A stretch of 61,135 bases of DNA from Macrostomum lignano. Its lineage: Eukaryota. The notes under the pieces were generated by a model, which saw only the letters and a list, made by a program, of their open reading frames with translations, did no database searches and was not told the DNA's origin. This document shows, piece after piece, positions 11,715 through 48,207 of this stretch. Position 1 is the stretch's first letter; each line of letters begins with the position of its first letter. The DNA lies in the NCBI GenBank assembly GCA_002269645.1, contig NIVC01004086.1, forward strand, positions 1 through 61,135. The letters run 5' to 3'. The position numbers and the translations under genes are program-made.

Positions 11715-18361
<6,647 letters not shown>

Positions 18362-18827: not shown

Positions 18828-20040
18828 GCTACTAGGGGTGAGATTTTGGAGCTACTAGGGGTGTGATTTTGGAGCTACTAGGGGTGAGATTTTGGAGCTA
18901 CTAGGTGTGAGATTTTGGAGCTACTAGGGGTGAGATTTTGGAGCTACTAGGTGTGAGATTTTGGAGCTACTAGGGGTGAGATTTTGGAGCTACTAGGGGT
19001 GAGATTTTGGAGCTACTAGGGGTGAGATTTTAGAGCTACTAGGGGTGAGATTTTAGAGCTACTAGGGCGAGATTTTAGAGCTACTAGGGGTGAGATTTTG
19101 GAGCTACTAGGGGTGAGATTTTGGAGCTACTAGGGGTGAGATTTTGGAGCTACTAGGGGTGAGATTTTGGAGCTACTAGGGGTGAGATTTTGGAGCTACT
19201 AGGGGTGAGATTTTGGAGCTACAAGGGTTGGATTTTGGAGCTACTAGGGGTGAGATTTTAGAGCTACTAGGGTGAGATTTTAGAGCTACTAGGGGTGAGA
19301 TTTTAGAGCTACTAGGGGGAGATTTTGGAGCTACTAGGGGTGAGATTTTTGAGCTACTGGGGTTGAGATTTTGGAGCTACTAGGGATGGAGATTTTGGAG
19401 CTACTAGGGGTGAGATTTTGGAGCTACTAGGGGTGAGATTTTGGAGCTACTAGGGGTGAGATTGTAGAGCTACTAGGGTGAGATTTTGGAGCTACTAGGG
19501 GTGAGATTTTAGAGCTACTAGGTGTGAGATTTTAGAGCTACTAGGGGTGAGATTTTAGAGCTTCTAGGGCGAGATTTTAGAGCTACTAGGGGTGAGATTT
19601 TAGAGCTACTAGGGGTGAGATTTTAGAGCTACTAGGGGGAGATTTTGGAGCTACTAGGGGTGAGATTTTTGAGCTACTGGGGTTGAGATTTTGGAGCTAC
19701 TAGGGATGGAGATTTTGGAGCTACTAGGGGTGAGATTTTGGAGCTACTAGGGGTGAGATTTTGGAGCTACTAGGGGTGAGATTTTGGAGCTACTAGGTGT
19801 GAGATTTTGGAGCTACTAGGGGTGAGATTTTAGAGCTACTAGGGGTGAGATTTTAGAGCTACTAGGGGGAGATTTTGGAGCTACTAGGGGGGAGATTTTT
19901 GAGCTACTGGGGTTGAGATTTTGGAGCTAAAAGGTGTGAGATTTTAGAGCTACTAGGGGTGAGATTTTAGAGCTACTAGAAGGAGATTTTGGGGCTACTA
20001 GAGGTTAGATTTTAGAGCTACTAGGGGGAGATTTTGTACC
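18828..20040. repeat. 23-bp minisatellite (ttttggagctactaggggtgaga), ~52 copies, intergenic
   Basis: Directly visible tandem array with 22-24-bp variants. Confidence 0.95.
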
Positions 20041-20582
20041 TACTGAGATCAGTCCCTAAATCTGTCGATAAAGTTCCTAGGTAGCAAAGTAAAATTGTTT
20101 GTCATTTTCAGTCGCAGGCTGAACGCACTGCTTATGAAATCATATCATATGTATGCATCAATTTTATGTATAAATATTTTATCTAGAATCGCGTGCCATA
20201 TATGCTACTGCCAGTAAGCAGTAAGCACTACTTACAGGGATGATAGCGCAGTCGCTCAGCCCTGCGTCGTTGCGAAGATTTTTTGTTTTTATTTCGTGGC
20301 AGTTGGAGACTGTGAAAAAAGACAAAAATTGCCAAAAAAAATTTTGGAGCGAAAATTCTTTTCTCTTTGTTCTCTGATTGTTGCTTTTTCTACCCAGCAA
20401 AATTTTCTTTCTCAAATCGCTTTGGACTCTGTTCTAACAATTGATTTTCATTTCGCCTTGTCTAATGGCGTTTCTTGGAGAAAGGAATTCGATCGTTTTC
20501 AATTATCTTGTTATTCCGTTTGGCACCCTCGGGGCTCGGAGTCAGCTAACTACGGACTGAGAACTTGTGTAAGTCTAAAAAT

Positions 20583-22192: not shown

Positions 22193-25100
22193 TCACAATC
22201 GAGGCGCGCTTCTATCGTTGGTCAGATTGGCGACCTTCTTCAATTTGGCGCCGCGGCGAATGTCGGACAGAAGTGCGCCGCGACCTGTCGATCGCTCCGG
22301 CGCGCGCGACGGTGGCGGCGGTGGCCCCGGCGGGGGAGGCGCTGGAGGCGGTGGGGGAGGCGCTGGAGGCGGCGGGGGAGGCGCTGGAGGTGGCGGGGGA
22401 GGCGCTTGCGGAGGAGGCGGAGGAGGCTCAGGCGCCCGCGGTGGTGCCCGCGCAGTCGGAGGCTGAGGCTGCGCCCGGACGTCCCGAGGCTGCCGCGGAC
22501 TTTCCGCGGCCGCTGTCGCGACGCCGCCGCTGCGAACCCCTGCTGGCAGGCGCTTGCGCACCCGCTTGAGAAAGGACGCGACCACCGCTGTCGAGGCGGT
22601 GGAATCGGAGGCAGCGGCCGTCTCGGCCACCGGGAACTCGACCATGCAGCCGGCGAAGAAGGCGTGATCAGCGATGGCACCGAGCTCCGGTATGCTGCCG
22701 AACGGCAGGCGCTCGAAGATGAAGTTCAAGACATCCAACAGTGGCCGGTATTTTCGGCCCTTGGCTGCGAGGATCTGAAAGGGGGTCGAATGCACTCTGT
22801 GAGCATCAGCAAAATGTGCCTCATTCTGAGATTAGGCCTCTATTCAGTTGGACACCTTTATCCAGTTGGAAACCTCACTACCCAGTCGGACACCTCACTA
22901 CCCAGTCGGACACCTCACTACCCAGTCGGACACCTCACTATCCAGTTGGAAACCTCACTACCCAGTCGGACACCTCACTACCCAGTCGGACACCTCACTA
23001 CCCAGCCGGACACCTCACTATCCAGTCGGAAACCTCACTATCCAGTCGGACACCTCACTATCCAGTCGGACACCTCACTATCCAGTCGGACACCTCACTA
23101 TCCAGTCGGACACCTCACTATCCAGTCGGACACCTCACTATCCAGTCGGACACCTCACTATCCAGTCGGACACCTCACTATCCAGTCGGACACCTCACTA
23201 CCCAGTCGGACACCTCACTATCCAGTCGGACACCTCACTACCCAGTCGGACACCTCACTATCCTGTCGGAAACCTCACTACCTAGTAGGAAACCTCACTA
23301 TCCAGTCGGACACCTCACTATCCATTCGGACACCTCACTACCCAGTCGGACACCTCACTATCCAGTCGGACACCTCACTACCCAGTCGGACACCTCACTA
23401 CCCAGTCGGACACCTCACTATCCAGCCGGACACCTCACTACCCAGTAGAAAACCTCACTACCCAGCCGGACACCTCACTATCCAGCCGGACACCTCACTA
23501 TCCAGTCAAACACCTCGGACACTCGCCTGAAACTCCACCGCTGTTGGGGCTGTCGCTGTCAGCTCGAAGCCGGTTGCCATTTCGAACAGCAGGTGTCCGA
23601 GCCCAACTGAATCCGTGAGGTGGCGCCTTCGGCCACCTGCTGGCAGGAGTCGGCGCAGCTCGGGCCATCGCGGCGGCACCTGGCCCGTCAGGACACTCTC
23701 CAAGCCGCCCAGCTGGACGCCTTCGTTGCTTAGCAACACGTTGCCAGCGTGTACAAAGCCGTGAGGCCGCAGCCCGCAGCTGTGCAGGTGCAGCAGGGCC
23801 CGCAGAACTCGGCCGGACCAGGCGTGCAGCTTTCCGAGCGGAACTGGACGGCGGCGACGGGCCACCTTCGTCTGGTGCGGGTACAGCGGGTTTGTCTGCG
23901 GAGGAAGGGCGGGGTGTCTGGTGCGGGTACAGCGGGTTTGTCTGCGGAGGAAGGGCGGGGTGTCTGGTGCGGGTACAGCGGGTTTGTCTGCGGAGGAAGG
24001 GCGGGGTGTCTGGTGCGGGTACAGCGGGTTTGTCTGCGGAGGAAGGGCGGGGTGTCTGGTGCGGGTACAGCGGGTTTGTCTGCGGAGGAAGGGCGGGGTG
24101 TCTGGTGCGGGTACAGCGGGTTTGTCTGCGGAGGAAGGGCGGGGTGTCTGGTGCGGGTACAGCGGGTTTGTCTGCGGAGGAAGGGCGGGGTGTCTGGTGC
24201 GGGTACAGCGGGTTTGTCTGCGGAGGAAGGGCGGGGTGTCTGGTGCGGGTACAGCGGGTTTGTCTGCGGAGGAAGGGCGGGGCGTCTGGTGTCTGCAGAG
24301 AGCAGGTTACTCCATACCTGGCAGATGAAGTCTCGCACGCTGCCTTTCGGACAGAAGGGCACAATGTGCAGGAACCGGGAGTGCTTCTCAATCAGGTCAA
24401 GCTGGCCAAGCAGCAGGCATTCGTGCTGCAAGGAAACCGAATAGATCAGAGATTTCGATTTTGGTGAGCAGAAGAGTTAGGGTGTCACTCAATTCCTCAG
24501 GGAGGGTGTCACTCAATTCCTCAGGGAGGGTGTCACTCAATTCCTCAGGGAGGGTGTCACTCAATTCCTCAGGGAGGGTGTCACTCAATTCCTCAGGGAG
24601 GGTGTCACTCAATTCCTCAGGGAGGGTGTCACTCAATTCCTCAGGGAGGGTGTCACTCAATTCCTCAGGGAGGGTGTCACTCAATTCCTCAGGGAGGGAA
24701 TCACTCAATTCCTCGGGGAGGTTGTCACTCAATTCCTCAGGGAGGGTGTCACTCAATTCCTCAGGGAGGGTGTCACTCAATTCCTCAGGGAGGGTGTCAC
24801 TCAATTCCTCAGGGAGGGTGTCACTCAATTCCTCAGGGAGGGTGTCACTCAATTCCTCAGGGAGGGAATCACTCAATTCCTCAGGGAGGGTGTCACTCAA
24901 TTCCTCAGGGAGGGTGTCACTCAATTCCTCAGGGAGGGTGTCACTCAATTCCTCAGGGAGGGTGTCACTCAATTCCTCAGGGAGGGTGTCACTCAATTCC
25001 TCAGGGAGGGTGTCACTCAATTCCTCAGGGAGGGTGTCACTCAATTCCTCAGGGAGGGTGTCACTCAATTCCTCAGGGAGGGTGTCACTCAATTCCTCAG

Positions 25101-27620
25101 GGAGGGTGTCACTCAATTCCTCAGGGAGGGTGTCACTCAATTCCTCAGGGAGGGTGTCACTCAATTCCTCAGGGAGGGTGTCACTCAATTCCTCAGGGAG
25201 GGTGTCACTCAATTCCTCAGGGAGGGTGTCACTCAATTCCTCAGGGAGGGTGTCACTCAATTCCTCAGGGAGGGTGTCACTCAATTCCTCAGGGAGGGTG
25301 TCACTCAATTCCTCAGGGAGGGTGTCACTCAATTCCTCAGGGAGGGTGTCACTCAATTCCTCAGGGAGGGTGTCACTCAATTCCTCAGGGAGGGTGTCAC
25401 TCAATTCCTCAGGGAGGGTGTCACTCAATTCCTCAGGGAGGGTGTCACTCAATTCCTCAGGGAGGGTGTCACTCAATTCCTCAGGGAGGGTGTCACTCAA
25501 TTCCTCAGGGAGGGTGTCACTCAATTCCTCAGGGAGGGTGTCACTCAATTCCTCAGGGAGGGTGTCACTCAATTCCTCAGGGAGGGTGTCACTCAATTCC
25601 TCAGGGAGGGTGTCACTCAATTCCTCAGGGAGGGTGTCACTCAATTCCTCAGGGAGGGAATCACTCAATTCCTCGGGGAGGTTGTCACTCAATTCCTCAG
25701 GGAGGGTGTCACTCAATTCCTCAGGGAGGGTGTCACTCAATTCCTCAGGGAGGGTGTCACTCAATTCCTCAGGGAGGGTGTCACTCAATTCCTCAGGGAG
25801 GGTGTCACTCAATTCCTCAGGGAGGGAATCACTCAATTCCTCAGGGAGGGTGTCACTCAATTCCTCAGGGAGGGTGTCACTCAATTCCTCAGGGAGGGTG
25901 TCACTCAATTCCTCAGGGAGGGTGTCACTCAATTCCTCAGGGAGGGTGTCACTCAATTCCTCAGGGAGGGTGTCACTCAATTCCTCAGGGAGGGTGTCAC
26001 TCAATTCCTCAGGGAGGGTGTCACTCAATTCCTCAGGGAGGGTGTCACTCAATTCCTCAGGGAGGGTGTCACTCAATTCCTCAGGGAGGGAATCACTCAA
26101 TTCCTCGGGGAGGTTGTCACTCAATTCCTCAGGGAGGGTGTCACTCAATTCCTCAGGGAGGGTGTCACTCAATTCCTCAGGGAGGGTGTCACTCAATTCC
26201 TCAGGGAGGGTGTCACTCAATTCCTCAGGGAGGGTGTCACTCAATTCCTCAGGGAGGGTGTCACTCAATTCCTCAGGGAGTCACTCAATTGCTAAAGGAG
26301 GGTGCAGTCACTGAATTCCTCAGGGAGGGTGTCACTCTGATCAGCACTCCCAAATGAGGGTGCCGCCCATGCAGTCACCCGCAGTCCTTCCAGCCACTGC
26401 CTGACGCAGGCGAAGCTCTTCTGCTTGAGAGGCAGCGGGCAGAGGGCCGGGTCGGACACGTAGGGGCTGAGCAGCAGCAGGCAGAAGCGATCACCGCCAG
26501 CTGAAGTGACGCTGAACCAGTTCCAGGATCTTCTAGTGCCCAGCTGGCTAAGGTGGTCCTTCACTATCCACTGGCGGCCATTTCTCAAGTGAAATTGCAG
26601 CATTAGAAATGCCGAATGCCTGATCTGTTCGCTCTCCTCCTTGATGCTGGCGTTCATGATCTCCAGGGTGCCGGACGTGTCCAGGCTGCTGGACCCGTTC
26701 TCCAGCTGCGAGTATCCGCTCCGGCTGGCGGGTGGGGGGAAATTGAAAATTGATTGATTTAGGGGCGATGAACAGGAAGCTAGAAAGTGGGGAAGCTGGG
26801 TAGATAAAAGAGACATGGGAAGACAGGGGGGTGGGTAGACGGGTGGGGTGGGTAGACGGGTAGGGTGGGTAAGCAAGGAGAGGGTGGGTAGACAGGGGGG
26901 TGGGTAGACAGGGGAGGGTGGGTAGACAAGGGAGGGTGGGTAGACAGGGGAGGGTGGGTAGACAGGGGAGGGTGGGTAGACAGGGGAGGGTGGGTAGACA
27001 GGGGAGGGTGGGTAGACAAGGGAGGGTGGGTAGACAGGGGAGGTCCGGTAAACAAAAGAAACATGGGGAAGACAGGGGGAGGGTGGGTAGACACTGGAGA
27101 CTGGGGAGGGTGGGTAGACACTGGAGACAAGGGAGGGTGGGTAGACACTGGAGACAGGGGAGGGTGGGTAGACACGGAGGGTTGGGAGGGTGGGTAGACA
27201 CTGGAGACAAGGGAGGGTGGGTAGATACGGGAGGGTGGGGAGGATGGGTAGACACTGCAGACAGGGGAGGGTGGGTAGATACGGGAGGGTGGGGAGGGTG
27301 GGGAGGATGGGTATAGACACGGGAGGGTGGGGAGGGTGAGTAGACACTGGAGACAGGGGAGGGTAGGTAGATTATTAGAGCAGACAAGAAAGGCAATTGT
27401 ATTGAGTTTACTGAATCACATCAGTAAGCTTCTATGACATAGTGATAGCTTAAGACAATGAAAAGTACCAAAGTCCTATGATTTGAAATACTGAGTAAAT
27501 GGATATCAAGAACATGGATTAGGCCCAAGGTTCTTACCGATTTAATATGCACTTTTGGCATACCAAACAGATAATCAGACATAAAAGTAGAAACGCTAGT
27601 AGACCACCAATTAAAGATGC
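22193..27620 (-). CDS. Slob: Slob/PXK-family pseudokinase with predicted TM helix, Pro-rich linker and C-terminal WH2 domain (5' end incomplete)
   Basis: Exons 27620-27538, 26724-26379, 24425-24318, 23871-23527, 22774-22193, total 1464 nt in frame to the stop; a probable extra 26-nt exon at 28000-27975. Slob-like segments: [42 protein letters not shown]...[38 protein letters not shown]. Tail [18 protein letters not shown] is a WH2 motif. Confidence 0.85.
22855..23515. repeat. 20-bp minisatellite (cacctcactatccagtcgga), ~33 copies, last Slob-like intron
   Basis: Visible tandem array abutting the donor at 23526. Confidence 0.95.
23872..24290. repeat. 46-bp GC-rich minisatellite, ~9 copies, Slob-like intron
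   Basis: Unit tctggtgcgggtacagcgggtttgtctgcggaggaagggcggggtg, near-perfect copies. Confidence 0.95.
24478..26338. repeat. 24-bp minisatellite (gggagggtgtcactcaattcctca), ~77 copies, filling a 1953-bp intron
   Basis: Near-perfect array between exon ends 24425 and 26379. Source of the artefactual 623-aa and 617-aa ORFs. Confidence 0.97.
26810..27365. repeat. Variable G-rich (plus strand) minisatellite, core gggagggtgggtagaca, Slob-like intron
   Basis: Visible degenerate tandem units, C-rich on the sense strand. Confidence 0.9.
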
Positions 27621-30496: not shown

Positions 30497-31678
30497 CTAG
30501 GCGGTGGAATGCCAATACAGAAAGCTTCTGTTCTTTTCCGACAGCAGCTCAGATCTGGGTGTCAAAACGAAAAACGATCCGGGTCTGTCTAAATTAACTT
30601 CTCTGTCTTCGATCTGCAGCGCGGCTCCCTTGTTACCGCGCGTGCCGTGGTACCCTGGCGCACTGCACAGGGTGATGCAGAGACGGTCGTGCCGCAGAGC
30701 GAAGCCTTCGTTAGCGATCTCACGTCCACGGACCAGCAGAGCGGCATTCACAGATCTCAGTGAGGAGCACAGAGCCTCCTTAGAGAAGTGATAGGAGCAG
30801 CTGCGTCCGCGCGTCACCCAGTTGAGCTTCAGCCGCTCTCCCTCCGGCACGGAGACCTCGAAGTTGTCCCGAGCTGGCGACTTCATCGGGTCCGAGCACA
30901 GCAGGTCGCACGCCAGGCCGAACTGTTGCAGCTCGAACGGCCGCTCGATCTTATTGTTCAGCAAGTCGGCGTTGGTCTCCGGCTGACCGGACGCGAACGG
31001 CTCCAGCTCGAAGCTCGGCGACACTCCGCCGTGGCAGCACAGCAGCTTCCCGCCTACGATGGCGGCCAGCGGTAGCCACTGGAAGCAGCGGAGGAAGCCG
31101 ACAAGCACCGAGGTGCCGCTGTTGGCACCGAAGCGGCCAATCAACTCGTCCTTGAAGCCGTAGTGACTGCATTTGCTGGCGCACTCGGAGCTGCCGCGGA
31201 GCAGCACGACCGAGTCTGGGTACATCAGCATCAGGCTCAGCAGCAGAACAATCACCTCCAGAGAGAACTTGCCCTTGTTCACGTAGTCGCCCAGAAACAG
31301 GAACTTGGCCTGAGGCGGCTGGCCCAGCTGGTCAAAGAAGCGCAGCAGGTCGTGGAACTGGCCATGAAGGTCGCCGACAATGTTGATGGGCGAGTCCGTT
31401 TGTACACAGACGCTGGTGCTGCTGCTCAGGTACTTGATCGCCATGTGGCACACGATGAGGCAGTCCTGTGCGGTCAGCTCTGGGTGCACCGAGTAGTCAT
31501 AGTTGGGCGCCTGGAAGCTGAGCAGCCGCTTCACCAGCTCCGCTAAGTCAGCATGGTCCATGACAACAGCAGAGGCGTTGCTTCTATTTTCTAGCATTGG
31601 TGCCTGAGTGGCGGAACTCTCGGCGCTCTGCATTTTGGCGCAACCAGGCGTGCAAGCCTGTGCGTCTGCCGCTGCCAT
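30497..31678 (-). CDS. PP1-like PPP-family phosphatase homolog, copy 1 (393 aa), predicted catalytically impaired
   Basis: Intronless. PINIVGDLHGQFHDLLRFF, KFLFLGDYVNKGKFSLEVIVLLL, LLRGSSEC, FQWLPLAAIVGGKLLCCHGGVSP, GLACDLLCSDP, LCSAPGY. Confidence 0.9.
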   Translation of the reverse strand: MAAADAQACTPGCAKMQSAESSATQAPMLENRSNASAVVMDHADLAELVKRLLSFQAPNYDYSVHPELTAQDCLIVCHMAIKYLSSSTSVCVQTDSPINIVGDLHGQFHDLLRFFDQLGQPPQAKFLFLGDYVNKGKFSLEVIVLLLSLMLMYPDSVVLLRGSSECASKCSHYGFKDELIGRFGANSGTSVLVGFLRCFQWLPLAAIVGGKLLCCHGGVSPSFELEPFASGQPETNADLLNNKIERPFELQQFGLACDLLCSDPMKSPARDNFEVSVPEGERLKLNWVTRGRSCSYHFSKEALCSSLRSVNAALLVRGREIANEGFALRHDRLCITLCSAPGYHGTRGNKGAALQIEDREVNLDRPGSFFVLTPRSELLSEKNRSFLYWHSTA

Positions 31679-32266
31679 CTTAGTGATAATTGGACTGACT
31701 TCTGATATTCAGCTAATAGCTGGTTCTGAATGAGTTCAACGAAAACCAATGGCCACTGGTGCCAATGTCTATGGCCAATCCTTCGTCAGTTGCAAGCAAG
31801 TGCACAAATCGTTTATTTGCACCAGTGCGAGTGAAGGTTCCGTGATCTGGAGCGTCAATCTGGCATATAACTATTTACGGAGTAACTTTTAGACCCCTTT
31901 TGGCCCCGCCGAATAAGTCTATGGTCCAATATAAAAGACGTTTCTTTGTCCCGGCCAAATAAACGATCCAAATAAATAAGTCAAACGAATGAGCCACAAG
32001 AAAGTACTCAAAGAAATACCAAGGACCACTGTGGTACCACTACTACTACAGTGGTCCTTGAGAAATACATAGAAGCAACAGATTATAATGTTTTAGAAAA
32101 GCGAGCAGTTGTTAACCAGTTTTTTGGCTTGACAGTTAAAAGTGAGTCAATGGGTCGTAACAGATCAACTCAATCAAAGTAGACAATCACCACGCACAAC
32201 TCCACATTGACCCCCCCCCAAATCACAGAACTCACCAGTTGTCGTGGACATCACTACCAATCGCAA

Positions 32267-32599
32267 TCACATCTTCCGAGCAGAGTTTCTCTTCGGACGT
32301 CGGCTCTCATTGAATTCCCCGGTCCTTCCAGAGGCTCCATGGGTTTCCGCAGTGTTTGAACAAGTGTTGTTCAGTTTCAGTATTGCAGCATGCTGAAAAT
32401 ATTCCTTCAATGTAGAAGCGCCATAGCAATCACCACGTTAATTTCGGATCTCTAAGATAAAGCACTTAAGAACGTAGTTGAGATCGCGCTTGCTCAAACT
32501 CGGATAGTCGGTTGCGGGTGCCAATGGCAAGTCACTTTAGACAGCTTCGACTTCAGCAAGACTAAGTAATTCAAAGCTGACGCTATCGACATCACTCAT
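32267..32599 (-). pseudogene. Decayed ZMYM/QRICH1/Crypton-related (DUF3504-adjacent) fragment
   Basis: Translates MSDVDSVSFELLSLAEVEAV*SDLPLAPATDYPSLSKRDLNYVLKCFILEIRN*RGDCYGASTLKEYF.... The LNY-L--F--EIR---G--Y pattern resembles ZMYM-type/Crypton-derived proteins (recalled, not searched). Two in-frame stops. Confidence 0.5.
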
Positions 32600-33389
32600 G
32601 CAGCAAATTAGTCGAAAATGTCACAGAGAAGGTTTAGTAGAGATAGAGACAACTACTCATTCTTAACTACCCAACACAGTCGTTTTTGTGAACGGCATCA
32701 AATCAAAATTTCTCTATGGTTAAATGTACAGTGTTAATATGGCCAAACGGGGTATAAATATATTATTTCCGTTTATTTTTGTCTTTGGTCTGAAGCATAA
32801 GCTTCGGACTCGCATCCAGGCCTCGGTTTCGCCTCGGCCAAGAGACGATTCCTCTGCTTTTGCTTCAGACCAAAAAAATAAATAAGTATAAACGGAAAAA
32901 ACTTTCATTTACCACACTCTATGCATGTGCTCGAGTTTTCTTGATTGCCATTATCATTTTGATGTGTTGTTCGATCAACAGCACTAGGAAAGTACCATTA
33001 AATAAGAACTTATTCTCTGTACTCAGAAAATCTAAAGTAGAGACCAACCGACCCCCAACAACTAGAATTGCATTGTCAGCTTTTCAGACTATTCTGTAAA
33101 CCCATTTTCTCCGATGAGGCTTGGTCCGCAGTTTAACATTCGCTATATAGTCTGTAAAAGGTCGAAAGCCCTAGCTGAACAACGTCAACACATTACATCT
33201 AAACGACATGATTACATAAAATATGCCGACGGCAGCTAAAAGACCAAAGTTAAAATTAACCAACTTACATGTTTTTTGCAATGCTGCTCGATCCCTAAGG
33301 CTTCTTGTGCTGTACTGGCATCAATCATGCCATAAAGTCACCAGGCTGATGTACAAACAGAAAAAAAAGATGTACAAGTAAGTGCCGAA

Positions 33390-33625
33390 GGTTGCATGAA
33401 GGAAGGCTGCATGAAGGAAGGCTGCATGAAGGAAGGCTGCATGAAGGAAGGCTGCATGAAGGAATTGGTTGCATGAAGGAAGGCTGCATGAAGGAAGGCT
33501 GCATGAAGGAAGGCTGCATGAAGGAAGGCTGCATGAAGGAAGGCTGCATGAAGGAAGGCTGCATGAAGGAAGGCTGCATGAAGGAAGGCTGCATGAAGGA
33601 AGGCTGCATGAAGGAAGGCTGCATG
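33390..33625. repeat. 15-bp minisatellite (gcatgaaggaaggct), ~15 copies, unit 1 spacer
   Basis: Visible tandem array, duplicated at 37289-37524. Confidence 0.95.
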
Positions 33626-34380
33626 CCAAATATAAGTCACCGAAGGCTGCTGCATACCGAAAACTACCTGCCCAAGGTTTCTGGTTGAGAAGCATGCTCG
33701 TACCCTATGGCAAAAAACTTGGCCATATGTACATTCATCTTCACCTGCATGAACGCGAATACACGAAGGCGAACGCGAACGCGAAGACAAGCCGCTAGCT
33801 ATTGAATCCACTCAGACCCCAGTACCAATCGTGTCCTTGATTTGAAGGAGAGCTCCGACTACTTGGTGGTGTCGCCAACTAAGCTTAAGAGAATTTCTCG
33901 AATTAAGATACATGTAGAGGATCACGCTTTCACACCAGAAATGAATTAGCTTGATTCGGAACACTATCTATGATGACCGGTTTGCCTAGTCGGCTTGTAC
34001 GGCGTGGGCTAACCGGCGTTTGCGATTGGCTAGGAGGGGTTGTTTGGCTCCACCCGTGGGGGTGGGTTTGCGGCGCTGGGGTGGGTGGTGTGTTTTGTGC
34101 CTTTTAGGCCTCACTTTGAGCTGAGATCGCTCGTTCTCGCGGCGTTGAATCGAACAACTCAAAAGACTAAGGTTACCAAGTTTTTTCAACCAGCTGAAAA
34201 GTTTTTCGACAACAATGACCAAGTCCATGCATTGAAAACAGAATCCTTAGTCTTTTTTTGGACCGTGTGATTGAGTTGCGTAAATCTTTAATCTCTTCCA
34301 GTAACTTAAAATGTAATGCGAATTCAAAATAATTTCTTTTTCAATACAAACAGAAATAAATGCAATAACGGAGTGTCGCT

Positions 34381-35574
34381 TCATTTCTTTTCACCGGCAA
34401 TCTCGCCAGCACTCTGCCAGAGATGCTGCAGGTGCTTCGCCGCAGCTTTGACTGGGCACAGAACGAAGAACGCGCCCGGCTTCCTCGTGTTGATGTTGCT
34501 GCTGTCAATCTGCAGCACGGAGGCGTTGTTCTTTTTCTGGCCCAGGTAGTCGGTGGAGCTGATTAGGGCGACGCAGCGGCGGTCCAAAAGCACGTTGAAG
34601 CCATCAGGGCCGTGACACTTGCCCCGAATCAGTAGAGACAAGTTTAGAATCCTTAGCACTTCCGACAGAGCCTCCTTAGAGAAGTGATAGGAGCAGCTGC
34701 GTCCGCGCGTCACCCAGTTGAGCTTCAGCCGCTCTCCCTCCGGCACGGAGACCTCGAAGTTGTCCCGAGCTGGCGACTTCATCGGGTCCGAGCACAGCAG
34801 GTCGCACGCCAGGCCGAACTGTTGCAGCTCGAACGGCCGCTCGATCTTATTGTTCAGCAAGTCGGCGTTGGTCTCCGGCTGACCGGACGCGAACGGCTCC
34901 AGCTCGAAGCTCGGCGACACTCCGCCGTGGCAGCACAGCAGCTTCCCGCCTACGATGGCGGCCAGCGGTAGCCACTGGAAGCAGCGGAGGAAGCCGACAA
35001 GCACCGAGGTGCCGCTGTTGGCACCGAAGCGGCCAATCAACTCGTCCTTGAAGCCGTAGTGACTGCATTTGCTGGCGCACTCGGAGCTGCCGCGGAGCAG
35101 CACGACCGAGTCTGGGTACATCAGCATCAGGCTCAGCAGCAGAACAATCACCTCCAGAGAGAACTTGCCCTTGTTCACGTAGTCGCCCAGAAACAGGAAC
35201 TTGGCCTGAGGCGGCTGGCCCAGCTGGTCAAAGAAGCGCAGCAGGTCGTGGAACTGGCCATGAAGGTCGCCGACAATGTTGATGGGCGAGTCCGTTTGTA
35301 CACAGACGCTGGTGCTGCTGCTCAGGTACTTGATCGCCATGTGGCACACGATGAGGCAGTCCTGTGCGGTCAGCTCTGGGTGCACCGAGTAGTCATCGTT
35401 TGGCGCCTGGAAGCTGAGCAGCCGCTTCACCAGCTCCGCTAAGTCAGCATGGTCCATGACAACAGCAGAGGCGTTGCTTCTATTTTCTAGCATTGGTGCC
35501 TGAGTGGCGGAACTCTCGGCGCTCTGCATTTTGGCGCAACCAGGCGTGCAAGCCTGTGCGTCTGCCGCTGCCAT
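34381..35574 (-). CDS. PP1-like PPP homolog, copy 2 (397 aa): chimera with the copy-1 N-terminus and copy-3 C-terminus
   Basis: Same degenerate PPP motifs. N-terminus identical to copy 1 and C-terminus (SEVLRILNL...AGEKK) identical to copy 3. Confidence 0.9.
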   Translation of the reverse strand: MAAADAQACTPGCAKMQSAESSATQAPMLENRSNASAVVMDHADLAELVKRLLSFQAPNDDYSVHPELTAQDCLIVCHMAIKYLSSSTSVCVQTDSPINIVGDLHGQFHDLLRFFDQLGQPPQAKFLFLGDYVNKGKFSLEVIVLLLSLMLMYPDSVVLLRGSSECASKCSHYGFKDELIGRFGANSGTSVLVGFLRCFQWLPLAAIVGGKLLCCHGGVSPSFELEPFASGQPETNADLLNNKIERPFELQQFGLACDLLCSDPMKSPARDNFEVSVPEGERLKLNWVTRGRSCSYHFSKEALSEVLRILNLSLLIRGKCHGPDGFNVLLDRRCVALISSTDYLGQKKNNASVLQIDSSNINTRKPGAFFVLCPVKAAAKHLQHLWQSAGEIAGEKK

Positions 35575-36165
35575 CTTAGTGATAATTGGACTGACTTCTG
35601 ATATTCAGCTAATAGCTGGTTCTGAATGAGTTCAACGAAAACCAATGGCCACTGGTGCCAATGTCTATGGCCAATCCTTCGTCAGTTGCAAGCAAGTGCA
35701 CAAATCGTTTATTTGCACCAGTGCGAGTGAAGGTTCCGTGATCTGGAGCGTCAATCTGGCATATAACTATTTACGGAGTAACTTTTAGACCCCTTTTGGC
35801 CCCGCCGAATAAGTCTATGGTCCAATATAAAAGACGTTTCTTTGTCCCGGCCAAATAAACGATCCAAATAAATAAGTCAAACGAATGAGCCACAAGAAAG
35901 TACTCAAAGAAATACCAAGGACCACTGTGGTACCACTACTACTACAGTGGTCCTTGAGAAATACATAGAAGCAACAGATTATAATGTTTTAGAAAAGCGA
36001 GCAGTTGTTAACCAGTTTTTTGGCTTGACAGTTAAAAGTGAGTCAATGGGTCGTAACAGATCAACTCAATCAAAGTAGACAATCACCACGCACAACTCCA
36101 CATTGACCCCCCCCCCCCAAATCACAGAACTCACCAGTTGTCGTGGACATCACTACCAATCGCAA

Positions 36166-36498
36166 TCACATCTTCCGAGCAGAGTTTCTCTTCGGACGTC
36201 GGCTCTCATTGAATTCCCCGGTCCTTCCAGAGGCTCCATGGGTTTCCGCAGTGTTTGAACAAGTGTTGTTCAGTTTCAGTATTGCAGCATGCTGAAAATA
36301 TTCCTTCAATGTAGAAGCGCCATAGCAATCACCACGTTAATTTCGGATCTCTAAGATAAAGCACTTAAGAACGTAGTTGAGATCGCGCTTGCTCAAACTC
36401 GGATAGTCGGTTGCGGGTGCCAATGGCAAGTCACTTTAGACAGCTTCGACTTCAGCAAGACTAAGTAATTCAAAGCTGACGCTATCGACATCACTCAT
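36166..36498 (-). pseudogene. Second copy of the ZMYM/Crypton-like fragment
   Basis: Duplicate of 32267-32599 inside the second 3.9-kb unit. Confidence 0.5.
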
Positions 36499-37288
36499 GC
36501 AGCAAATTAGTCGAAAATGTCACAGAGAAGGTTTAGTAGAGATAGAGACAACTACTCATTCTTAACTACCCAACACAGTCGTTTTTGTGAACGGCATCAA
36601 ATCAAAATTTCTCTATGGTTAAATGTACAGTGTTAATATGGCCAAACGGGGTATAAATATATTATTTCCGTTTATTTTTGTCTTTGGTCTGAAGCATAAG
36701 CTTCGGACTCGCATCCAGGCCTCGGTTTCGCCTCGGCCAAGAGACGATTCCTCTGCTTTTGCTTCAGACCAAAAAAATAAATAAGTATAAACGGAAAAAA
36801 CTTTCATTTACCACACTCTATGCATGTGCTCGAGTTTTCTTGATTGCCATTATCATTTTGATGTGTTGTTCGATCAACAGCACTAGGAAAGTACCATTAA
36901 ATAAGAACTTATTCTCTGTACTCAGAAAATCTAAAGTAGAGACCAACCGACCCCCAACAACTAGAATTGCATTGTCAGCTTTTCAGACTATTCTGTAAAC
37001 CCATTTTCTCCGATGAGGCTTGGTCCGCAGTTTAACATTCGCTATATAGTCTGTAAAAGGTCGAAAGCCCTAGCTGAACAACGTCAACACATTACATCTA
37101 AACGACATGATTACATAAAATATGCCGACGGCAGCTAAAAGACCAAAGTTAAAATTAACCAACTTACATGTTTTTTGCAATGCTGCTCGATCCCTAAGGC
37201 TTCTTGTGCTGTACTGGCATCAATCATGCCATAAAGTCACCAGGCTGATGTACAAACAGAAAAAAAAGATGTACAAGTAAGTGCCGAA

Positions 37289-37524
37289 GGTTGCATGAAG
37301 GAAGGCTGCATGAAGGAAGGCTGCATGAAGGAAGGCTGCATGAAGGAAGGCTGCATGAAGGAATTGGTTGCATGAAGGAAGGCTGCATGAAGGAAGGCTG
37401 CATGAAGGAAGGCTGCATGAAGGAAGGCTGCATGAAGGAAGGCTGCATGAAGGAAGGCTGCATGAAGGAAGGCTGCATGAAGGAAGGCTGCATGAAGGAA
37501 GGCTGCATGAAGGAAGGCTGCATG
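37289..37524. repeat. 15-bp minisatellite, unit 2 spacer
   Basis: Duplicate of 33390-33625, including the same internal gaattggttg variant. Confidence 0.95.
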
Positions 37525-38278
37525 CCAAATATAAGTCACCGAAGGCTGCTGCATACCGAAAACTACCTGCCCAAGGTTTCTGGTTGAGAAGCATGCTCGT
37601 ACCCTATGGCAAAAAACTTGGCCATATGTACATTCATCTTCACCTGCATGAACGCGAATACACGAAGGCGAACGCGAACGCGAAGACAAGCCGCTAGCTA
37701 TTGAATCCACTCAGACCCAGTACCAATCGTGTCCTTGATTTGAAGGAGAGCTCCGACTACTTGGTGGTGTCGCCAACTAAGCTTAAGAGAATTTCTCGAA
37801 TTAAGATACATGTAGAGGATCACGCTTTCACACCAGAAATGAATTAGCTTGATTCGGAACACTATCTATGATGACCGGTTTGCCTAGTCGGCTTGTACGG
37901 CGTGGGCTAACCGGCGTTTGCGATTGGCTAGGAGGGGTTGTTTGGCTCCACCCGTGGGGGTGGGTTTGCGGCGCTGGGGTGGGTGGTGTGTTTTGTGCCT
38001 TTTAGGCCTCACTTTGAGCTGAGATCGCTCGTTCTCGCGGCGTTGAATCGAACAACTCAAAAGACTAAGGTTACCAAGTTTTTTCAACCAGCTGAAAAGT
38101 TTTTCGACAACAATGACCAAGTCCATGCATTGAAAACAGAATCCTTAGTCTTTTTTTGGACCGTGTGATTGAGTTGCGTAAATCTTTAATCTCTTCCAGT
38201 AACTTAAAATGTAATGCGAATTCAAAATAATTTCTTTTTCAATACAAACAGAAATAAATGCAATAACGGAGTGTCGCT

Positions 38279-39454
38279 TCATTTCTTTTCACCGGCAATC
38301 TCGCCAGCACTCTGCCAGAGATGCTGCAGGTGCTTCGCCGCAGCTTTGACTGGGCACAGAACGAAGAACGCGCCCGGCTTCCTCGTGTTGATGTTGCTGC
38401 TGTCAATCTGCAGCACGGAGGCGTTGTTCTTTTTCTGGCCCAGGTAGTCGGTGGAGCTGATTAGGGCGACGCAGCGGCGGTCCAAAAGCACGTTGAAGCC
38501 ATCAGGGCCGTGACACTTGCCCCGAATCAGTAGAGACAAGTTTAGAATCCTTAGCACTTCCGACAGAGCCTCCTTAGAGAAGTGATAGGAGCAGCTGCGT
38601 CCGCGCGTCACCCAGTTGAGCTTCAGCCGCTCTCCCTCCGGCACGGAGACCTCGAAGTTGTCCCGAGCTGGCGACTTCATCGGGTCCGAGCACAGCAGGT
38701 CGCACGCCAGGCCGAACTGTTGCAGCTCGAACGGCCGCTCGATCTTGTTCAGCAAGTCGGCGTTGGTCTCCGGCTGACCGGACGCGAACGGCTCCAGCTC
38801 GAAGCTCGGCGACACTCCGCCGTGGCAGCACAGCAGCTTCCCGCCTACGATGGCGGCCAGCGGTAGCCACTGGAAGCAGCGGAGGAAGCCGACAAACACC
38901 GAGGTGCCGCTGTTGGCACCGAAGCGGCCAATCAACTCGTCCTTGAAGCCGTAGTGACTGCATTTGCTGGCGCACTCGGAGCTGCCGCGGAGCAGCACGA
39001 CCGAGTCTGGGTACATCAGCATCAGGCTCAGCAGCAGAACAATCACCTCCAGAGAGAACTTGCCCTTGTTCACGTAGTCGCCCAGAAACAGGAACTTGGC
39101 CTGAGGCGGCTGGCCCAGCTGGTCAAAGAAGCGCAGCAGGTCGTGGAACTGGCCATGAAGGTCGCCGACAATGTTGATGGGCGAGTCCGTTTGTACACAG
39201 ACGCTGGTGCTGCTGCTCAGGTACTTGATCGCCATGTGGCACACGATGAGGCAGTCCTGTGCGGTCAGCTCTGGGTGCACCGAGTAGTCATCGTTTGGCG
39301 CCTGGAAGCTGAGCAGCCGCTTCACCAACTCCGCTAAGTCAATGGTGCAATCAGGAGGAACGTCGACACCGAGCGACACTGTGCTGCTTTTCCTCGGCAT
39401 CGGTTCTTCGGATTTACCAGAGGCGTCGTTCTCGGAACACTTGTCGGAGTCCAT
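38279..39454 (-). CDS. PP1-like PPP homolog, copy 3 (391 aa from the first ATG, MDSDKCSEND...)
   Basis: Same core with a distinct N-terminus. The first ATG is at 39454 (the ORF track start at 39589 is TTG). Core differs from copies 1/2 by L>F and a 3-bp deletion (LLNKIE). Confidence 0.9.
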   Translation of the reverse strand: MDSDKCSENDASGKSEEPMPRKSSTVSLGVDVPPDCTIDLAELVKRLLSFQAPNDDYSVHPELTAQDCLIVCHMAIKYLSSSTSVCVQTDSPINIVGDLHGQFHDLLRFFDQLGQPPQAKFLFLGDYVNKGKFSLEVIVLLLSLMLMYPDSVVLLRGSSECASKCSHYGFKDELIGRFGANSGTSVFVGFLRCFQWLPLAAIVGGKLLCCHGGVSPSFELEPFASGQPETNADLLNKIERPFELQQFGLACDLLCSDPMKSPARDNFEVSVPEGERLKLNWVTRGRSCSYHFSKEALSEVLRILNLSLLIRGKCHGPDGFNVLLDRRCVALISSTDYLGQKKNNASVLQIDSSNINTRKPGAFFVLCPVKAAAKHLQHLWQSAGEIAGEKK

Positions 39455-41521: not shown

Positions 41522-42960
41522 TGGGATCTAGAGTTGTCTTGAGATGGGATATCGAGTTTGTCTGAGATGGGATATCGAGTTTTTCTGAGATGGGATATCG
41601 AGTTGTCTGAGATGGGATATCGAGTTTTTCTGAGATGGGATATCGAGTTGTCTGAGATGGGATATCGAGTTGTCTGAGATGGGATATCGAGTTGTCTTGA
41701 GATGGGATATCGAGTTGTCTGAGATGGGATATCGAGTTTTTCTGAGATGGGATATCGAGTTGTCTGAGATGGGATATCGAGTTGTCTGAGATGGGATATC
41801 GAGTTGTCTTGAGATGGGATATCGAGTTGTCTTGAGATGGGATATCGAGTTTGTCTGAGATGGGATATCGAGTTTGTCTAGGGGATGGGATATCGAGTTT
41901 GTCTAGGGGATGGGATATCGAGTTTGTCTAGGGGATGGGATATCGAGTTTGTCTGAGATGGGATATCGAGTTGTCTTGAGATGGGATATCGAGTTTGTCT
42001 GAGATGGGATATCGAGTTTGTCTAGGGGATGGGATATCGAGTTTGTCTGAGATGGGATATCGAGTTTGTCTGAGATGGGATATCGAGTTTGTCTGAGATG
42101 GGATATCGAGTTTGTCTGAGATGGGATATCGAGTTTGTCTAGGGGATGGGATATCGAGTTTGTCTAGGGGATGGGATATCGAGTTTTTCTGAGATGGGAT
42201 ATCGAGTTGTCTGAGATGGGATATCGAGTTGTCTGAGATGGGATATCGAGTTGTCTTGAGATGGGATATCGAGTTGTCTTGAGATGGGATATCGAGTTTG
42301 TCTGAGATGGGATATCGAGTTTGTCTAGGGGATGGGATATCGAGTTTGTCTAGGGGATGGGATATCGAGTTTGTCTAGGGGATGGGATATCGAGTTTGTC
42401 TGAGATGGGATATCGAGTTGTCTTGAGATGGGATATCGAGTTTGTCTGAGATGGGATATCGAGTTTGTCTAGGGGATGGGATATCGAGTTTGTCTGAGAT
42501 GGGATATCGAGTTTGTCTGAGATGGGATATCGAGTTTGTCTGAGATGGGATATCGAGTTTGTCTGAGATGGGATATCGAGTTTGTCTAGGGATGGGATAT
42601 CGAGTTTGTCTAGGGGATGGGATATCGAGTTTGTCTGAGATGGGATATCGAGTTTGTCTGAGATGGGATATCGAGTTTGTCTGAGATGGGATATCGAGTT
42701 TGTCTGAGATGGGATATCGAGTTGTCTTGAGATGGGATATCCAGTTTGTCTGAGATGGGATATCGAGTTTTTCTGAGATGGGATATCGAGTTTTTCTGAG
42801 ATGGGATATCGAGTTGTTTTGAGATGGGATTTCGAGTTTGTCTGAGATGGGATATCGAGTTGTCTTGGGGATGGGATATCGAGTTGTCTTGAGATGGGAT
42901 ATCGAGTTTTTCTGAGATGGGATATCGAGTTTTTCTGAGATGGGATATCGAGTTGTCTTG
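41522..42960. repeat. 22-24-bp minisatellite (gagatgggatatcgagtttgtct), ~62 copies, just downstream of the RTK stop
   Basis: Visible array ending 38 bp from the RTK stop codon. Confidence 0.95.
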
Positions 42961-42997: not shown

Positions 42998-45900
42998 TCA
43001 CGGAAGGTCGGTGTGCTCGTAGCACCTCTCGAGTCCGTCCAGCCGGGCCAGGATGCTTTCGAAGCTGGGCCGATCGCGCGACTCCCAGGCCCAGCAGTCG
43101 CGCATGAGGCCGTAGAGGCCCTCGCCGGCGAGCACCGGCTGCGGATTGACGCCGCCGGCCTCCAGGTACGGCAGCACCCCGTTCGGCGACACGCCGGGGT
43201 ACGGGGTCTCGCCTTTGGAGAATATCTCGTAGAGGAGGATGCCGTAGGCCCAGCTGCAATTCAAGGAGGCTTGCTAGGCGTTGAATGGAACGATTTTAAA
43301 CTGCTTTGAGCAGTGGAGTTGGCAAGTTTTAATGGATTCGATAAGAGGATTTCAAGGATTCGACAAGAGGATTTTACGGATTTTTGAGATGGGAATATCA
43401 GGGATTTGAGATTGGGATTACATGGATTTGAGATGGGGTTTTATGGAGTTGAGATGGGATTTCATGGATTTTGAGATGGGGATTTATGGAGTTGAGATGG
43501 GATTACATGGATTTGAGATGGGGTTTTATGGAGTTGAGATGGGATTTCATGGATTTTGAGATAGGGATTTCATGGAATTTGAGATTGGAACTTAGAGATA
43601 TAGTATATTTGGATTTCATAGAGTTGAGAGGGGACTTCATGGATTTTGAGATGGGATCATAAAGGGTTCGAGTAGGGGAAACCAGATTTAGGAGAATTGA
43701 ACGTGAATAGAAGCGAAGAAACTCGTTGAACTTTGAAACTAGAAAAACAAGCCCCAACGTTCTGCAGTGACGCACCGGAATAGGATTCAAATATTTTTAC
43801 TAAGTGCATACGCAAGGTCAAAGAGCTGAAATGGGGCAAGGAGCAAGCAAATTTACAGCAGCTTTTGGGGGTGCAGCAGTGCACGCAGGATCAGATTCCC
43901 TGTTTAGGACCGGAGGGAAGGGGCGGGGAGTTATTTATACCCCCCTTCACTTGTCCCTTCAGCCAGGCCAGCAGTAGCTGAAAAGGCTTTCGCGCACTTT
44001 TCAAGTTTTGAGGCCAGCAGCGGGGCTTTTAAAGGCTGCTCTGTGAAAAAGCATTCCCCCAACCAATAAAGCGCGCAAGGTTGGCCTGGGAATTGCTGCT
44101 GTTTTGCTTCTCAAAATTCGTCCTTTATCCCACCGTTGGGATCAGGAATCGCCTCGCTGTTATTGTGTGAGCGAGGCCATTGAGCAATCATAAATTTTAC
44201 TTTCACCGGCGCGTGAACAACTCTCAAAGCTAAGCCAGTTGCAATTAATAAAATTCAACCGGTAGGTTAGGTAAAAAATCATCCCAAAACGCCCGGCAGG
44301 TAAGCAAGAACTCACTCAATGCGCTGCATCCATCAGCACAAAGGACTTTCCACGCGCGCAACAAAGAGAGGAACTATATTATAGGAGCCTTGTTCTCTTC
44401 CACCTCTCCCGCCCGCCTCCCCGTGCTACCCGCGTCCCTAAGCCACGACTCACTCACGTGGAATCACGTGATCCGATCTGGATTTCTATGAATGCCACGC
44501 GGTAAAAAAACCTGCAACGCACACACTGTAGAGAGGGGGGATATTTTACGGTATACCGCCGCCGCCGCGCTGTGCTTACAAAACTGGCGGTGAAGTGAAG
44601 ATCTCATGGCGCCCCCCGACCGCGTGGCGGTTCCGCGCAGGCCAGTTGTGGAGGGGCGAGCTGAGCAATGAAGTCGCAGCTGCACTGCTATGTTATTACG
44701 CTATTGCATTGACTGTCTGGCGGTAAAGATTTATGCACAGGCAAAGGTTTCTGCCATTCTATAATTCCGATTGTGTGGCCGGGGAATAAAAGGGAGGAGT
44801 AGCAGCAGGAGGAGAATGCCGAAGAATGGCGAACTCCGCTATTCTCACCGTCAGCCTTTTCACGCGCTGCTAGCAAACGGAGCTAGAAAATCAGTTATTA
44901 ATGACAATCTATAGCGGAATTCCAACAACACTTCCCGGTTCTTTCAATCCCCTCCTAACGCCGAGAAACTGGATCAGGATTAGCTCAATTTTGATCGCTG
45001 GGAGATTTATCAGATCGTCACCTTCCCGGGCGATTTAGGCGGGGTGTCTGTCAGGAGCAAAATGAGCTGCTGCTGCTGCTACTAGGGGAGGGGAGCAGAG
45101 AGACAAAGAGACTCAAAGCCCAGCTTATTGGTCAATCGCGGGCCGAGAATAGGGCAGCAATTTAATTATAATTAATTGCCTTCTTAGTCCGGGTGAAGGG
45201 CCTGACTTTGCCGCAGCCGCTCCGCTGCCGACCGCCACAGCGACGGGCTGAACTGAGCAAACTTGAGAAGGGTGGAGTCCCGCAACTCGGGGGGGGGGAA
45301 CGGTGTGGACATGCATAATTTATGGCTGCTGGAGCGCCTCCCGTTTAGACACTAATTGGCGGACGGAGACAAACGTGCCGTTTTGAGTAATAACTCCTGA
45401 ACTGGGCTGTTTAGTCAGCATCCCTCACTTCATCTGAGCCTTCTAGCAACAATGAAAAACACTTTTAAATGCAGTTTATTGAAATTTAAATACCAGACTA
45501 AAATGGAATAGGTGTGTGAAGTGTGTGAATGGATTCAAGGAACTGGTGACCACGATAGGTTCTCGAAATTCACGTTGTGAGATACCGGTTGACTCTAGGG
45601 ATTCACGGTTTGAGATACCGGTTGACTCGAGGGATTCACGGTTTGAGATACCGGTTGACTCAAGGGATTCACGGTTTGAGATACTGGTTGATTTAAGGGA
45701 TTCATGGTTTGAGATACCGGTTGACTCGAGGGATTCACGGTTTGAGATACTGGTTGACTCGAGGGATTCACGGTTTGAGATACCGGTTGACTCAAGGGAT
45801 TCCCGGTTTGAGATACCGGTTGATTTAAGGGATTCATGGTTTGAGATACCGGTTGACTCGAGGGATTCACGGTTTGAGATACCGGTTGACTCAAGGGATT

Positions 45901-47177
45901 CCCGGTTTGAGATACCGGTTGATTTAAGGGATTCATGGTTTGAGATACCAGTTGACTCGAGGGATTCACGGTTTGAGATACCGGTTGACTCAAGGGATTC
46001 CCGGTTTGAGATACCGGTTGATTTAAGGGATTCATGGTTTGAGATACCGGTTGACTCGAGGGATTCACGGTTTGAGATACCGGTTGACTCAAGGGATTCC
46101 CGGTTTGAGATACCGGTTGATTTAAGGGATTCATGGTTTGAGATACCGGTTGACTCGAGGGATTCACGGTTTGAGATACCGGTTGACTCAAGGGATTCCC
46201 GGTTTGAGATACCGGTTGATTTAAGGGATTCATGGTTTGAGATACCGGTTGACTCGAGGGATTCACGGTTTGAGATACCGGTTGACTCGAGGGATTCACA
46301 GTTTGAGATACCGGTTGACTCAAGGGATTCCCGGTTTGAGATACCGGTTGACTCCATGGATTCACGGTTTGAGATACCGGTTGACTCCATGGATTCACGG
46401 TTTGAGATACCCACTAACCCATAGTTATTAAAGGTGATTTGCTAGTACTAAGCAGAATTGCTCACAAATACAAACAATGTACACAGAACTTACACATCAG
46501 ATTTGCTGAAGAAGTACTGCGACTTCAAGCACTCCGGAGCCAGCCACTTCACCGGCAGCTTGCCCTGCAAAATATAAGATGCTTGTAAAATACTCAAGAT
46601 CGTATTGGGAAATTCTACCGGTTAGTATAAGTTATTACAACCCCGCAACTATACTCTGCTCTCGTAGTTCCTATCTCGAAAGGTGTGGGTTACACCACGA
46701 CCACGTGACATGTGACATTGCTCTGTACTTGAGCTGCCCCCCTCCCTAGCCAAAAGGCCAGACGAAAACAAAAACAGGCCTGTTCCAATCAGACAGACAG
46801 ACAGGCGGGCAGGCAGATCACACAAGTTTCAGTAGCCGGAATGATCAAATTATTTGAATGAAAACAGCCCCCCTGGTCCAGATATTTCACTATGGTCTTC
46901 ACTACTAAGGACAGCAAGTGTGGGCTTGTTCGAGTTGGAAGCGAAACTGTAGTTTTAGTACAGCTGCACCTGCCCCCCAAAGGTCTTTAGTGCATCTGTG
47001 CGCTGCGGCCACATTTACAAATATTTGAACAGCTTTCACTGAAAGCTAGGAAAGCAGCGGCTGGCTAAAATTTACTGGGCATTCGTAAATCACAGACTGA
47101 AAAAATCGGTGAGGGGCCACCCGGAGCAGGCGACAGAATACAATAAACTGTTTCTATTACGATGCTACGATAGACAG

Positions 47178-47233
<56 letters not shown>

Positions 47234-47370
47234 ATCTATCTATCTATCTATCTTATCTATCTATCTGTCTATCTATCTGTCTATCTATCTATCTATCTAT
47301 CTATCTTATCTATCTATCTTATCTATCTATCGATCTATCTATCTTATCTATCTATCTGTCTATCTATCTG

Positions 47371-47414
<44 letters not shown>

Positions 47415-47460
47415 ATCTATCTATCTATCTATCTTATCTATCTATCTGTCTATCTATCTG

Positions 47461-47503
<43 letters not shown>

Positions 47504-47504
47504 G

Positions 47505-47547
<43 letters not shown>

Positions 47548-47548
47548 G

Positions 47549-47585
<37 letters not shown>

Positions 47586-47616
47586 TTATCTGTCTATCTA
47601 TCTATCTATCTATCTG

Positions 47617-47683
<67 letters not shown>

Positions 47684-47732
47684 GTCTGTCTATCTATCTA
47701 TCTATCTGTCTATTTATCTATCTATCTATCTG

Positions 47733-47775
<43 letters not shown>

Positions 47776-47848
47776 GTCTATCTATCTATCTATCTATCTA
47801 TCTGTCTATCTATCTATCTATCTATCTGTCTATCTATCTATCTATCTG

Positions 47849-47939
<91 letters not shown>

Positions 47940-47996
47940 GTCTAAGATCTATCTATCTATCTATCTGTCTGTCTATCTATCTATCTATCTGTCTAT

Positions 47997-48038
<42 letters not shown>

Positions 48039-48095
48039 GTCTAAGATCTATCTATCTATCTATCTGTCTGTCTATCTATCTATCTATCTGTCTAT

Positions 48096-48157
<62 letters not shown>

Positions 48158-48158
48158 G

Positions 48159-48207
<49 letters not shown>

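Follow-up and report, generated by a model that had tools for sequence, protein, structure and literature searches.

The window analysed here is the whole of contig NIVC01004086.1 of Macrostomum lignano (61,135 bp; assembly Mlig_3_7, GCA_002269645.1). Three intronless PP1-like ORFs lie head to tail on its minus strand, in the order g3, g2, g1. The first of them, g3 (gene C), occupies positions 38279-39454 and encodes 391 aa from its ATG; the mechanically called ORF runs on to 39589, where it opens with a TTG, and the ATG-started CDS begins at 39454. The middle gene, g2 (34381-35574, 397 aa), is chimeric, with a 5′ part equal to that of g1 and a 3′ part equal to that of g3. The last one, g1 (gene A; 30497-31678, 393 aa), matches Pfam Metallophos with E = 3e-24. 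Orthologs of A and of C were found in two further contigs of the assembly (L001 and L004, described below), and a g2-type gene was absent from both. When the g2 protein was used as the query of a protein search, Macrostomum lignano proteins were retrieved at 85-99% identity.

Each gene is made of three segments, all on the minus strand. A core of about 781 bp is common to the three genes and extends over 30769-31550 in g1, 34665-35446 in g2 and 38563-39341 in g3. It is preceded by the segment N-a in g1 (31551-31678) and g2 (35447-35574) and by N-c in g3 (39342-39454), and it is followed by C-a in g1 (30497-30768) and by C-c in g2 (34381-34664) and g3 (38279-38562). In a three-way alignment, g1 and g2 were 100% identical 5′ of the core, through N-a and the upstream spacer, and g3 was unalignable with them there (about 40% identity). 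On the 3′ side, g2 and g3 were 100% identical through C-c and the downstream spacer, and g1 showed a DNA identity of only 40-58% to either. The composition proposed for the array in an earlier note on this DNA, with N-a/core/C-a in copy 1, N-c/core/C-c in copy 3 and N-a/core/C-c in copy 2, is therefore exact, given the 100% identity of the segments concerned, and both junctions of g2 keep the reading frame, as had also been claimed. The description of A and C as diverged paralogs was correct too, because C-a and C-c share only 36.8% protein identity; N-a and N-c cannot be aligned to each other at all. A and C appear from these comparisons to be old, deeply diverged paralogs, and g2 appears to inherit the upstream region and N-terminal tail of A together with the C-terminal third and the downstream region of C.

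In the NCBI annotation of the contig, g2 figures only as a 319-aa product that starts from an internal Met at 35340, without N-a, and g3 is not called. An exact-sequence look-up in the protein collection and in the gene-position index found the full-length product of g2 (N-a/C-c) or of g3 nowhere else. No paper naming these locus tags was found in the literature, and a search that combined Macrostomum with chimeric genes or unequal crossing-over gave no Macrostomum paper among the matches listed.

The rest of the window is crowded with long arrays of minisatellites and microsatellites, whose periods range from 4 to 46 nt; a 24-mer reaches 77 copies. The arrays lie at 2556-3084, 15782-16381, 18820-20044, 22840-23516 and 24479-26337 on one side of the genes and at 41522-42958, 45568-46411, 47178-48248 and 51286-51806 on the other. 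Several of these arrays create long spurious ORFs, and their copy numbers differ between the window and the homeologous contigs. A 380-aa ORF on the plus strand (11748-12890) carries a Pfam Pkinase domain (E = 1e-47) and probably represents a single exon of a kinase gene nearby. Downstream of the PP1-like genes, at about 22.2-28.0 kb on the minus strand, there is a WH2-domain, pseudokinase-like gene that was found in all three homeologs.

The region 30769-39341 consists of 2.2 copies of a unit of 3896/3898 bp, with unit starts at 30769, 34665 and 38563. A self-BLAST aligned 30769-35446 with 34665-39341 over 4681 nt at 99.77% identity, with 4 mismatches and 3 gaps. Both ends of the repeat fall exactly on core edges, and there are no novel or inserted bases at the junctions between units. 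The figure of 3.9 kb, which the earlier note gave as the length of the spacer, is in fact the repeat period; the intergenic spacers measure 2702 bp between g2 and g1 (spacer 1, 31679-34380) and 2704 bp between g3 and g2 (spacer 2, 35575-38278). Each contains a 15-nt minisatellite detected by TRF (33387-33625 and 37286-37524, respectively), with the same copy number in both. No substitution separates the two spacers over 2701 aligned bp, and the only differences are the lengths of two homopolymer C-runs. When all the duplicated sequence outside the core was considered, 0 substitutions were counted in 3114 bp, so that the four inter-unit substitutions are all inside the core (P = 0.012).

To place these observations, the background of the assembly has to be considered. 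Mlig_3_7 is a Canu assembly of PacBio reads (coverage 130x) of the inbred line DV1, polished with Pilon (PMC5730564). The DV1 genome is neopolyploid and comprises three homeologous subgenomes with a SNP divergence of 1.9-2.4%; 36% of the scaffold length of Mlig_3_7 has been reported to be chimeric between subgenomes, and copy-number errors are known in addition to the chimeric scaffolds (PMC10733133). The flanks of the WH2-domain gene, which is present in three copies in the assembly, in the window and in two further contigs, were used to locate outgroup loci. These contigs, NIVC01001283.1 (L001, with L003 on the same contig) and NIVC01001730.1 (L004), are collinear with the window and carry the A/C array (positions 10001-15242 of L001 and 331-5983 of L004). 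Each of them holds just two PPP genes, a C gene (N-c/core/C-c) and an A gene (N-a/core/C-a) separated by a spacer, with no third gene. The core edges in both arrays are the same as in the window, and the 15-nt minisatellite of the window spacers is present in their spacers as well.

The spacers of the three homeologs are about equidistant, at 0.93-1.2% substitutions, which amounts to 25-32 substitutions between the window spacer and either of the others. The divergence seen here was 0.93-1.9% for L001 and 1.2-4.5% for L004. This range matches the published divergence of the three subgenomes (PMC10733133), and L001 and L004 are most likely the other two homeologous subgenomes. Were the duplication as old as the split of the homeologs, about 29 substitutions would be expected over the 3114 bp in which 0 were observed. 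The two-gene array is thus ancestral and the three-gene state derived, as read from the two-gene condition of both outgroup contigs and from the contrast between 0 substitutions within the window spacers and about 1% between homeologs. The middle gene had been called new, and this agrees with an extra copy that is young and derived: from these counts, its age would be at most about one-tenth of that of the subgenome divergence, unless conversion has erased differences. As a separate observation, the C genes of L001 (10001-11179) and L004 (331-1509) have 0 differences over their whole CDS, whereas 22 sites separate the A genes of the same two contigs and the spacers diverge by about 1%. The identity of the C genes may be due to strong constraint on C or to conversion between homeologs.

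Core variants were then tabulated over seven genes, namely g1, g2, g3 and the A and C genes of L001 and L004. In the outgroup homeologs, 5 of the 781 core sites distinguish A from C and provide fixed diagnostic positions at core offsets 12, 39, 41, 59 and 444. The g2 core is A-type at all five of them, and the gene is C-type from offset 781 (the 3′ edge of the core) on. This pattern fits a single A-to-C exchange within the last 336 bp of the core, from offset 444 to its 3′ edge (34665-35000, minus strand). At offsets 39, 41, 44 and 59, the C genes of L001 and L004 have C, T, C and T, whereas g3 has G, G, A and G, like g2. The A at offset 44 (44A) is common to g2 and g3 and absent from the other homeologs. 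A conversion tract from g2 to g3 over offsets 39-59 (39281-39301, minus strand), in which A-type bases are accompanied by the window-specific 44A, would account for all of these bases in one step. In g1, a G-to-T change at offset 48 replaces Asp by Tyr.

If the window is considered alone, the core variants of g2 form a mosaic relative to g1 and g3, with an A-C-A-C pattern, and the first reading of this mosaic was a crossover with a simultaneous conversion patch. That reading was set aside, since with two outgroups it requires one event more than a single exchange; it may be kept as a possible alternative at that cost. With both outgroups, one exchange and a series of later events save one step, and this history is preferred. 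Conversion tracts in this array are short (21-431 bp). The near-identity of the core within sharp limits, in paralogs that are diverged elsewhere, together with the A-type patch in g3, is the pattern by which gene conversion is recognised. In each of the three homeologs the likeness of the A and C cores stops sharply at the same edges, and the homogenisation of the core therefore predates the subgenome split. A 3-bp deletion (AAT, one Asn of 'LLNNK', core offsets 594-596) was also noticed in g3 (window 38747) and in gene A of L001, the other five genes being without it; this common deletion is either recurrent slippage or the result of exchange between paralogs and homeologs.

Taken together, the sequence data make it probable that g2 is a young hybrid gene produced by unequal exchange in a C-A array at one of three homeologous loci. 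The ancestral locus would have consisted of C (N-c/core/C-c), a spacer of 2.7-2.9 kb and A (N-a/core/C-a), head to tail, and gene conversion would have homogenised the 781-bp centres of A and C ahead of the subgenome split. Later, and in the lineage of the window alone, two chromatids or homologs would have paired out of register, A core against C core, and a crossover within the final third of this region would have generated one extra 3.9-kb unit. The product chromosome, of the anti-Lepore type, would carry C, a spacer, the chimera (the A promoter, N-a, the core, C-c and the 3′ flank of C), a second spacer and A. For the later events we infer the following order: a C-to-A substitution in g2 at core offset 44, the short conversion tract from g2 to g3 (offsets 39-59), the substitution in g1 at offset 48 and the 3-bp deletion in g3.

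The signature of homologous unequal exchange between cores is a duplicated block bounded exactly by the core edges with no new junction, as is the case here. Likewise, three features of NAHR were found at this locus: the duplication ends in pre-existing direct repeats, the parental array is present in the outgroup and the switch is single and in frame. The proposal that an A-C array had misaligned and crossed over within the shared core is thus supported, both by the two-gene parents preserved in L001 and L004 and by the position of the repeat ends on the core edges.

Against a young hybrid gene it could be argued that only two genes are real, and that a false overlap through the 781-bp cores, which are more than 99% identical, led Canu to double one 3.9-kb unit, the differences between units being left by the polishing of multi-mapped reads. 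The array does rest on assembly sequence, from one Canu and Pilon assembly of a neopolyploid genome with known copy-number errors and chimeric scaffolds (PMC10733133). The spacers are identical down to the copy number of the minisatellite, every variable base of the g2 core is also present in g1 or g3, as would be the case in a mixed consensus, and the g2 and g3 products are without an independent record. The older assembly ML2 is also relevant in this regard. Two UniRef models derived from it, P0080 (1380 aa) and P0082 (627 aa), are fused neighbouring genes. P0080 confirms the L001 locus as two-gene. In P0082, an N-c...C-c gene with a window-type, g2-like core runs straight into the latter half of a g1-type gene; this model resembles a two-gene version of the homeolog in the window, which ML2 may hold as two genes. 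A collapse of g3 with g2 would produce P0082, and so would a genuinely two-gene locus; the model could also point to an over-expansion in Mlig_3_7.

Other features of the array speak against such an error. The array is in the middle of a contig of 61 kb in which there is no N anywhere and therefore no scaffold gap. The two spacer consensuses were called separately, since they differ at two homopolymer lengths, instead of a single consensus having been placed in both positions. Each of the three cores represents a haplotype of its own, and the 44A of g2 and g3 is window-specific. In general, near-identical tandem copies are much more frequently lost by collapse during assembly than created by it. 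Finally, with an array of only 8.6 kb and 130x of PacBio coverage (PMC5730564), spanning reads should exist. On balance, we regard a doubling by the assembler as unlikely, albeit with a real chance of being correct.

A related candidate was P0003 (UniRef A0A1I8HH36), an ML2 model with the architecture N-c/core/C-a, the reciprocal of g2. It is not taken as evidence of a reciprocal product of the exchange, as it is an exact join of a 186-aa prefix of the C gene (L004 331-1509) and a 336-aa suffix of the A gene (L004 4802-5983), both of the third homeolog, with no contig on record for it. P0003 could be a collapse in the gene model or assembly, or a real deletion haplotype of another homeolog.

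The three genes could also be real and have arisen by a route other than crossover, which we consider very unlikely. If the homology of the cores were used in replication template switching or in break-induced replication, the end product would have the same sequence as that of a crossover, and nothing in the sequence separates template switching from meiotic or mitotic unequal crossover. The other possible route, a whole-gene duplicate later converted at one end, needs more events and would not put both ends of the duplication exactly at core edges. Least credible of all, an ancestral three-gene array from which both other homeologs lost the middle unit by reverse unequal crossover, with the units of the window homogenised by conversion, can appeal to the fact that a g3-g2 unequal exchange would regenerate exactly C plus A and to the demonstrable activity of gene conversion in the array, but it is rejected because of the identity of the window spacers, as 3.1 kb of non-coding spacer with a hypervariable minisatellite would have had to be homogenised to 0 substitutions, against about 1% between homeologs, by conversion tracts that are short here (21-431 bp), and two independent identical deletions, or one deletion and its spread between homeologs, would be needed. 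Unequal crossover between A and C thus remains the preferred origin of g2.

Concerning the proteins, A and C genes match Pfam Metallophos (PF00149) with E = 1e-24 to 1e-27, and the closest solved structures are those of PP1 alpha/gamma and of Chlamydomonas PP1 (FAP15), with E of about 1e-47 over residues 40-359. Compared to the PP1 catalytic subunit (PPP, PF00149), homology extends along the PP1 domain and the GDxHG and HGG motifs are kept. In contrast, A and C genes have GDYVNKG in the place of GDYVDRG, RGSSE in the place of RGNHE and R or K instead of the histidine of RAH; the SAPNY motif is SAPGY in C-a and SSTDY in C-c, and there are two insertions. When the catalytic motifs were examined in all the A and C genes, GDLHG was thus conserved and the other three were replaced by GDYVNKG, RGSSE and RGR/RGK. 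The altered residues have established roles in PPP catalysis. The A/C genes are therefore not to be filed as active phosphatases, three of their catalytic motifs having been replaced, and they are probably catalytically dead pseudophosphatases. Two M. lignano paralogs, P0004 and P0005, retain all the PP1 motifs, and C-a and C-c are each 41-49% identical in protein sequence to these catalytically intact proteins. All seven A/C ORFs are intact, and pN/pS between homeologs was 0.08-0.47, on few differences; by these measures they do not look like decaying genes. The set as a whole looks like a lineage-specific family of PP1-like pseudophosphatases. If functional, g2 would probably be a non-catalytic, PP1-fold binding protein that combines the N-terminal tail and the regulation of A with the C-terminal third of C.

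A broader interpretation would join these elements, with the core as a standing recombination cassette that shuffles N-tails and promoters against C-terminal thirds, selection keeping the termini distinct, g2 functional and expressed, and P0003 a real reciprocal N-c/C-a haplotype in another subgenome. The C-terminal thirds, by analogy with PP1, would contribute much of the surface for the docking of regulators, and selection on the termini would account for the sharp edges of the core. As a whole, we hold this combination to be improbable.

If reads confirm the array, the origin proposed for g2 would make it an unusually clean and very young hybrid gene formed by unequal exchange. Since the genome retains the ancestral state at two loci, every step receives a direction without recourse to another species, from old paralogs to homogenisation of the core, unequal exchange and further short conversion. 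The array is also an illustration of incipient divergence in gene content among the three subgenomes of a neopolyploid flatworm, and it flags an uncharacterised family of PP1-like pseudophosphatases. Its practical use would be mainly as a marker of two- versus three-gene haplotypes in M. lignano lines; in addition, the locus is a test case for the accuracy of assemblies in tandem repeats and a tidy case for teaching.

As to its kind, g2 is a new example of a well-known event, of the anti-Lepore type, which involves no new mechanism and holds no surprise for a specialist. Chimeras produced by unequal crossover between tandem paralogs include the anti-Lepore and Lepore haemoglobins, the red/green opsin hybrids and the GYPA/GYPB hybrids. 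As in these systems, tandem paralogs in the same orientation appear to have misaligned at a region of homology, both parents persist on either side of an in-frame hybrid, the junctions contain no new sequence and the ends of the repeat fall inside the homology block. In contrast to the globin, opsin and glycophorin hybrids, homology in g2 is confined to a conversion-homogenised core of 781 bp instead of being gene-wide, with C-termini that are 37% identical and N-termini that cannot be aligned. The ancestral state is moreover preserved in M. lignano in two homeologous subgenomes of the same genome, and the genes are probably PP1-like pseudoenzymes. A second comparison can be made with the concerted evolution reported for Drosophila duplicates (PMC2588116), in which tandem paralogs are partly homogenised by gene conversion. 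An island of near-identity within diverged paralogs is common to both cases, as are short shared derived patches, here from g2 to g3 at offsets 39-59. What differs in M. lignano is that the island would have gone on to serve as the substrate of a change in copy number that created a new gene.
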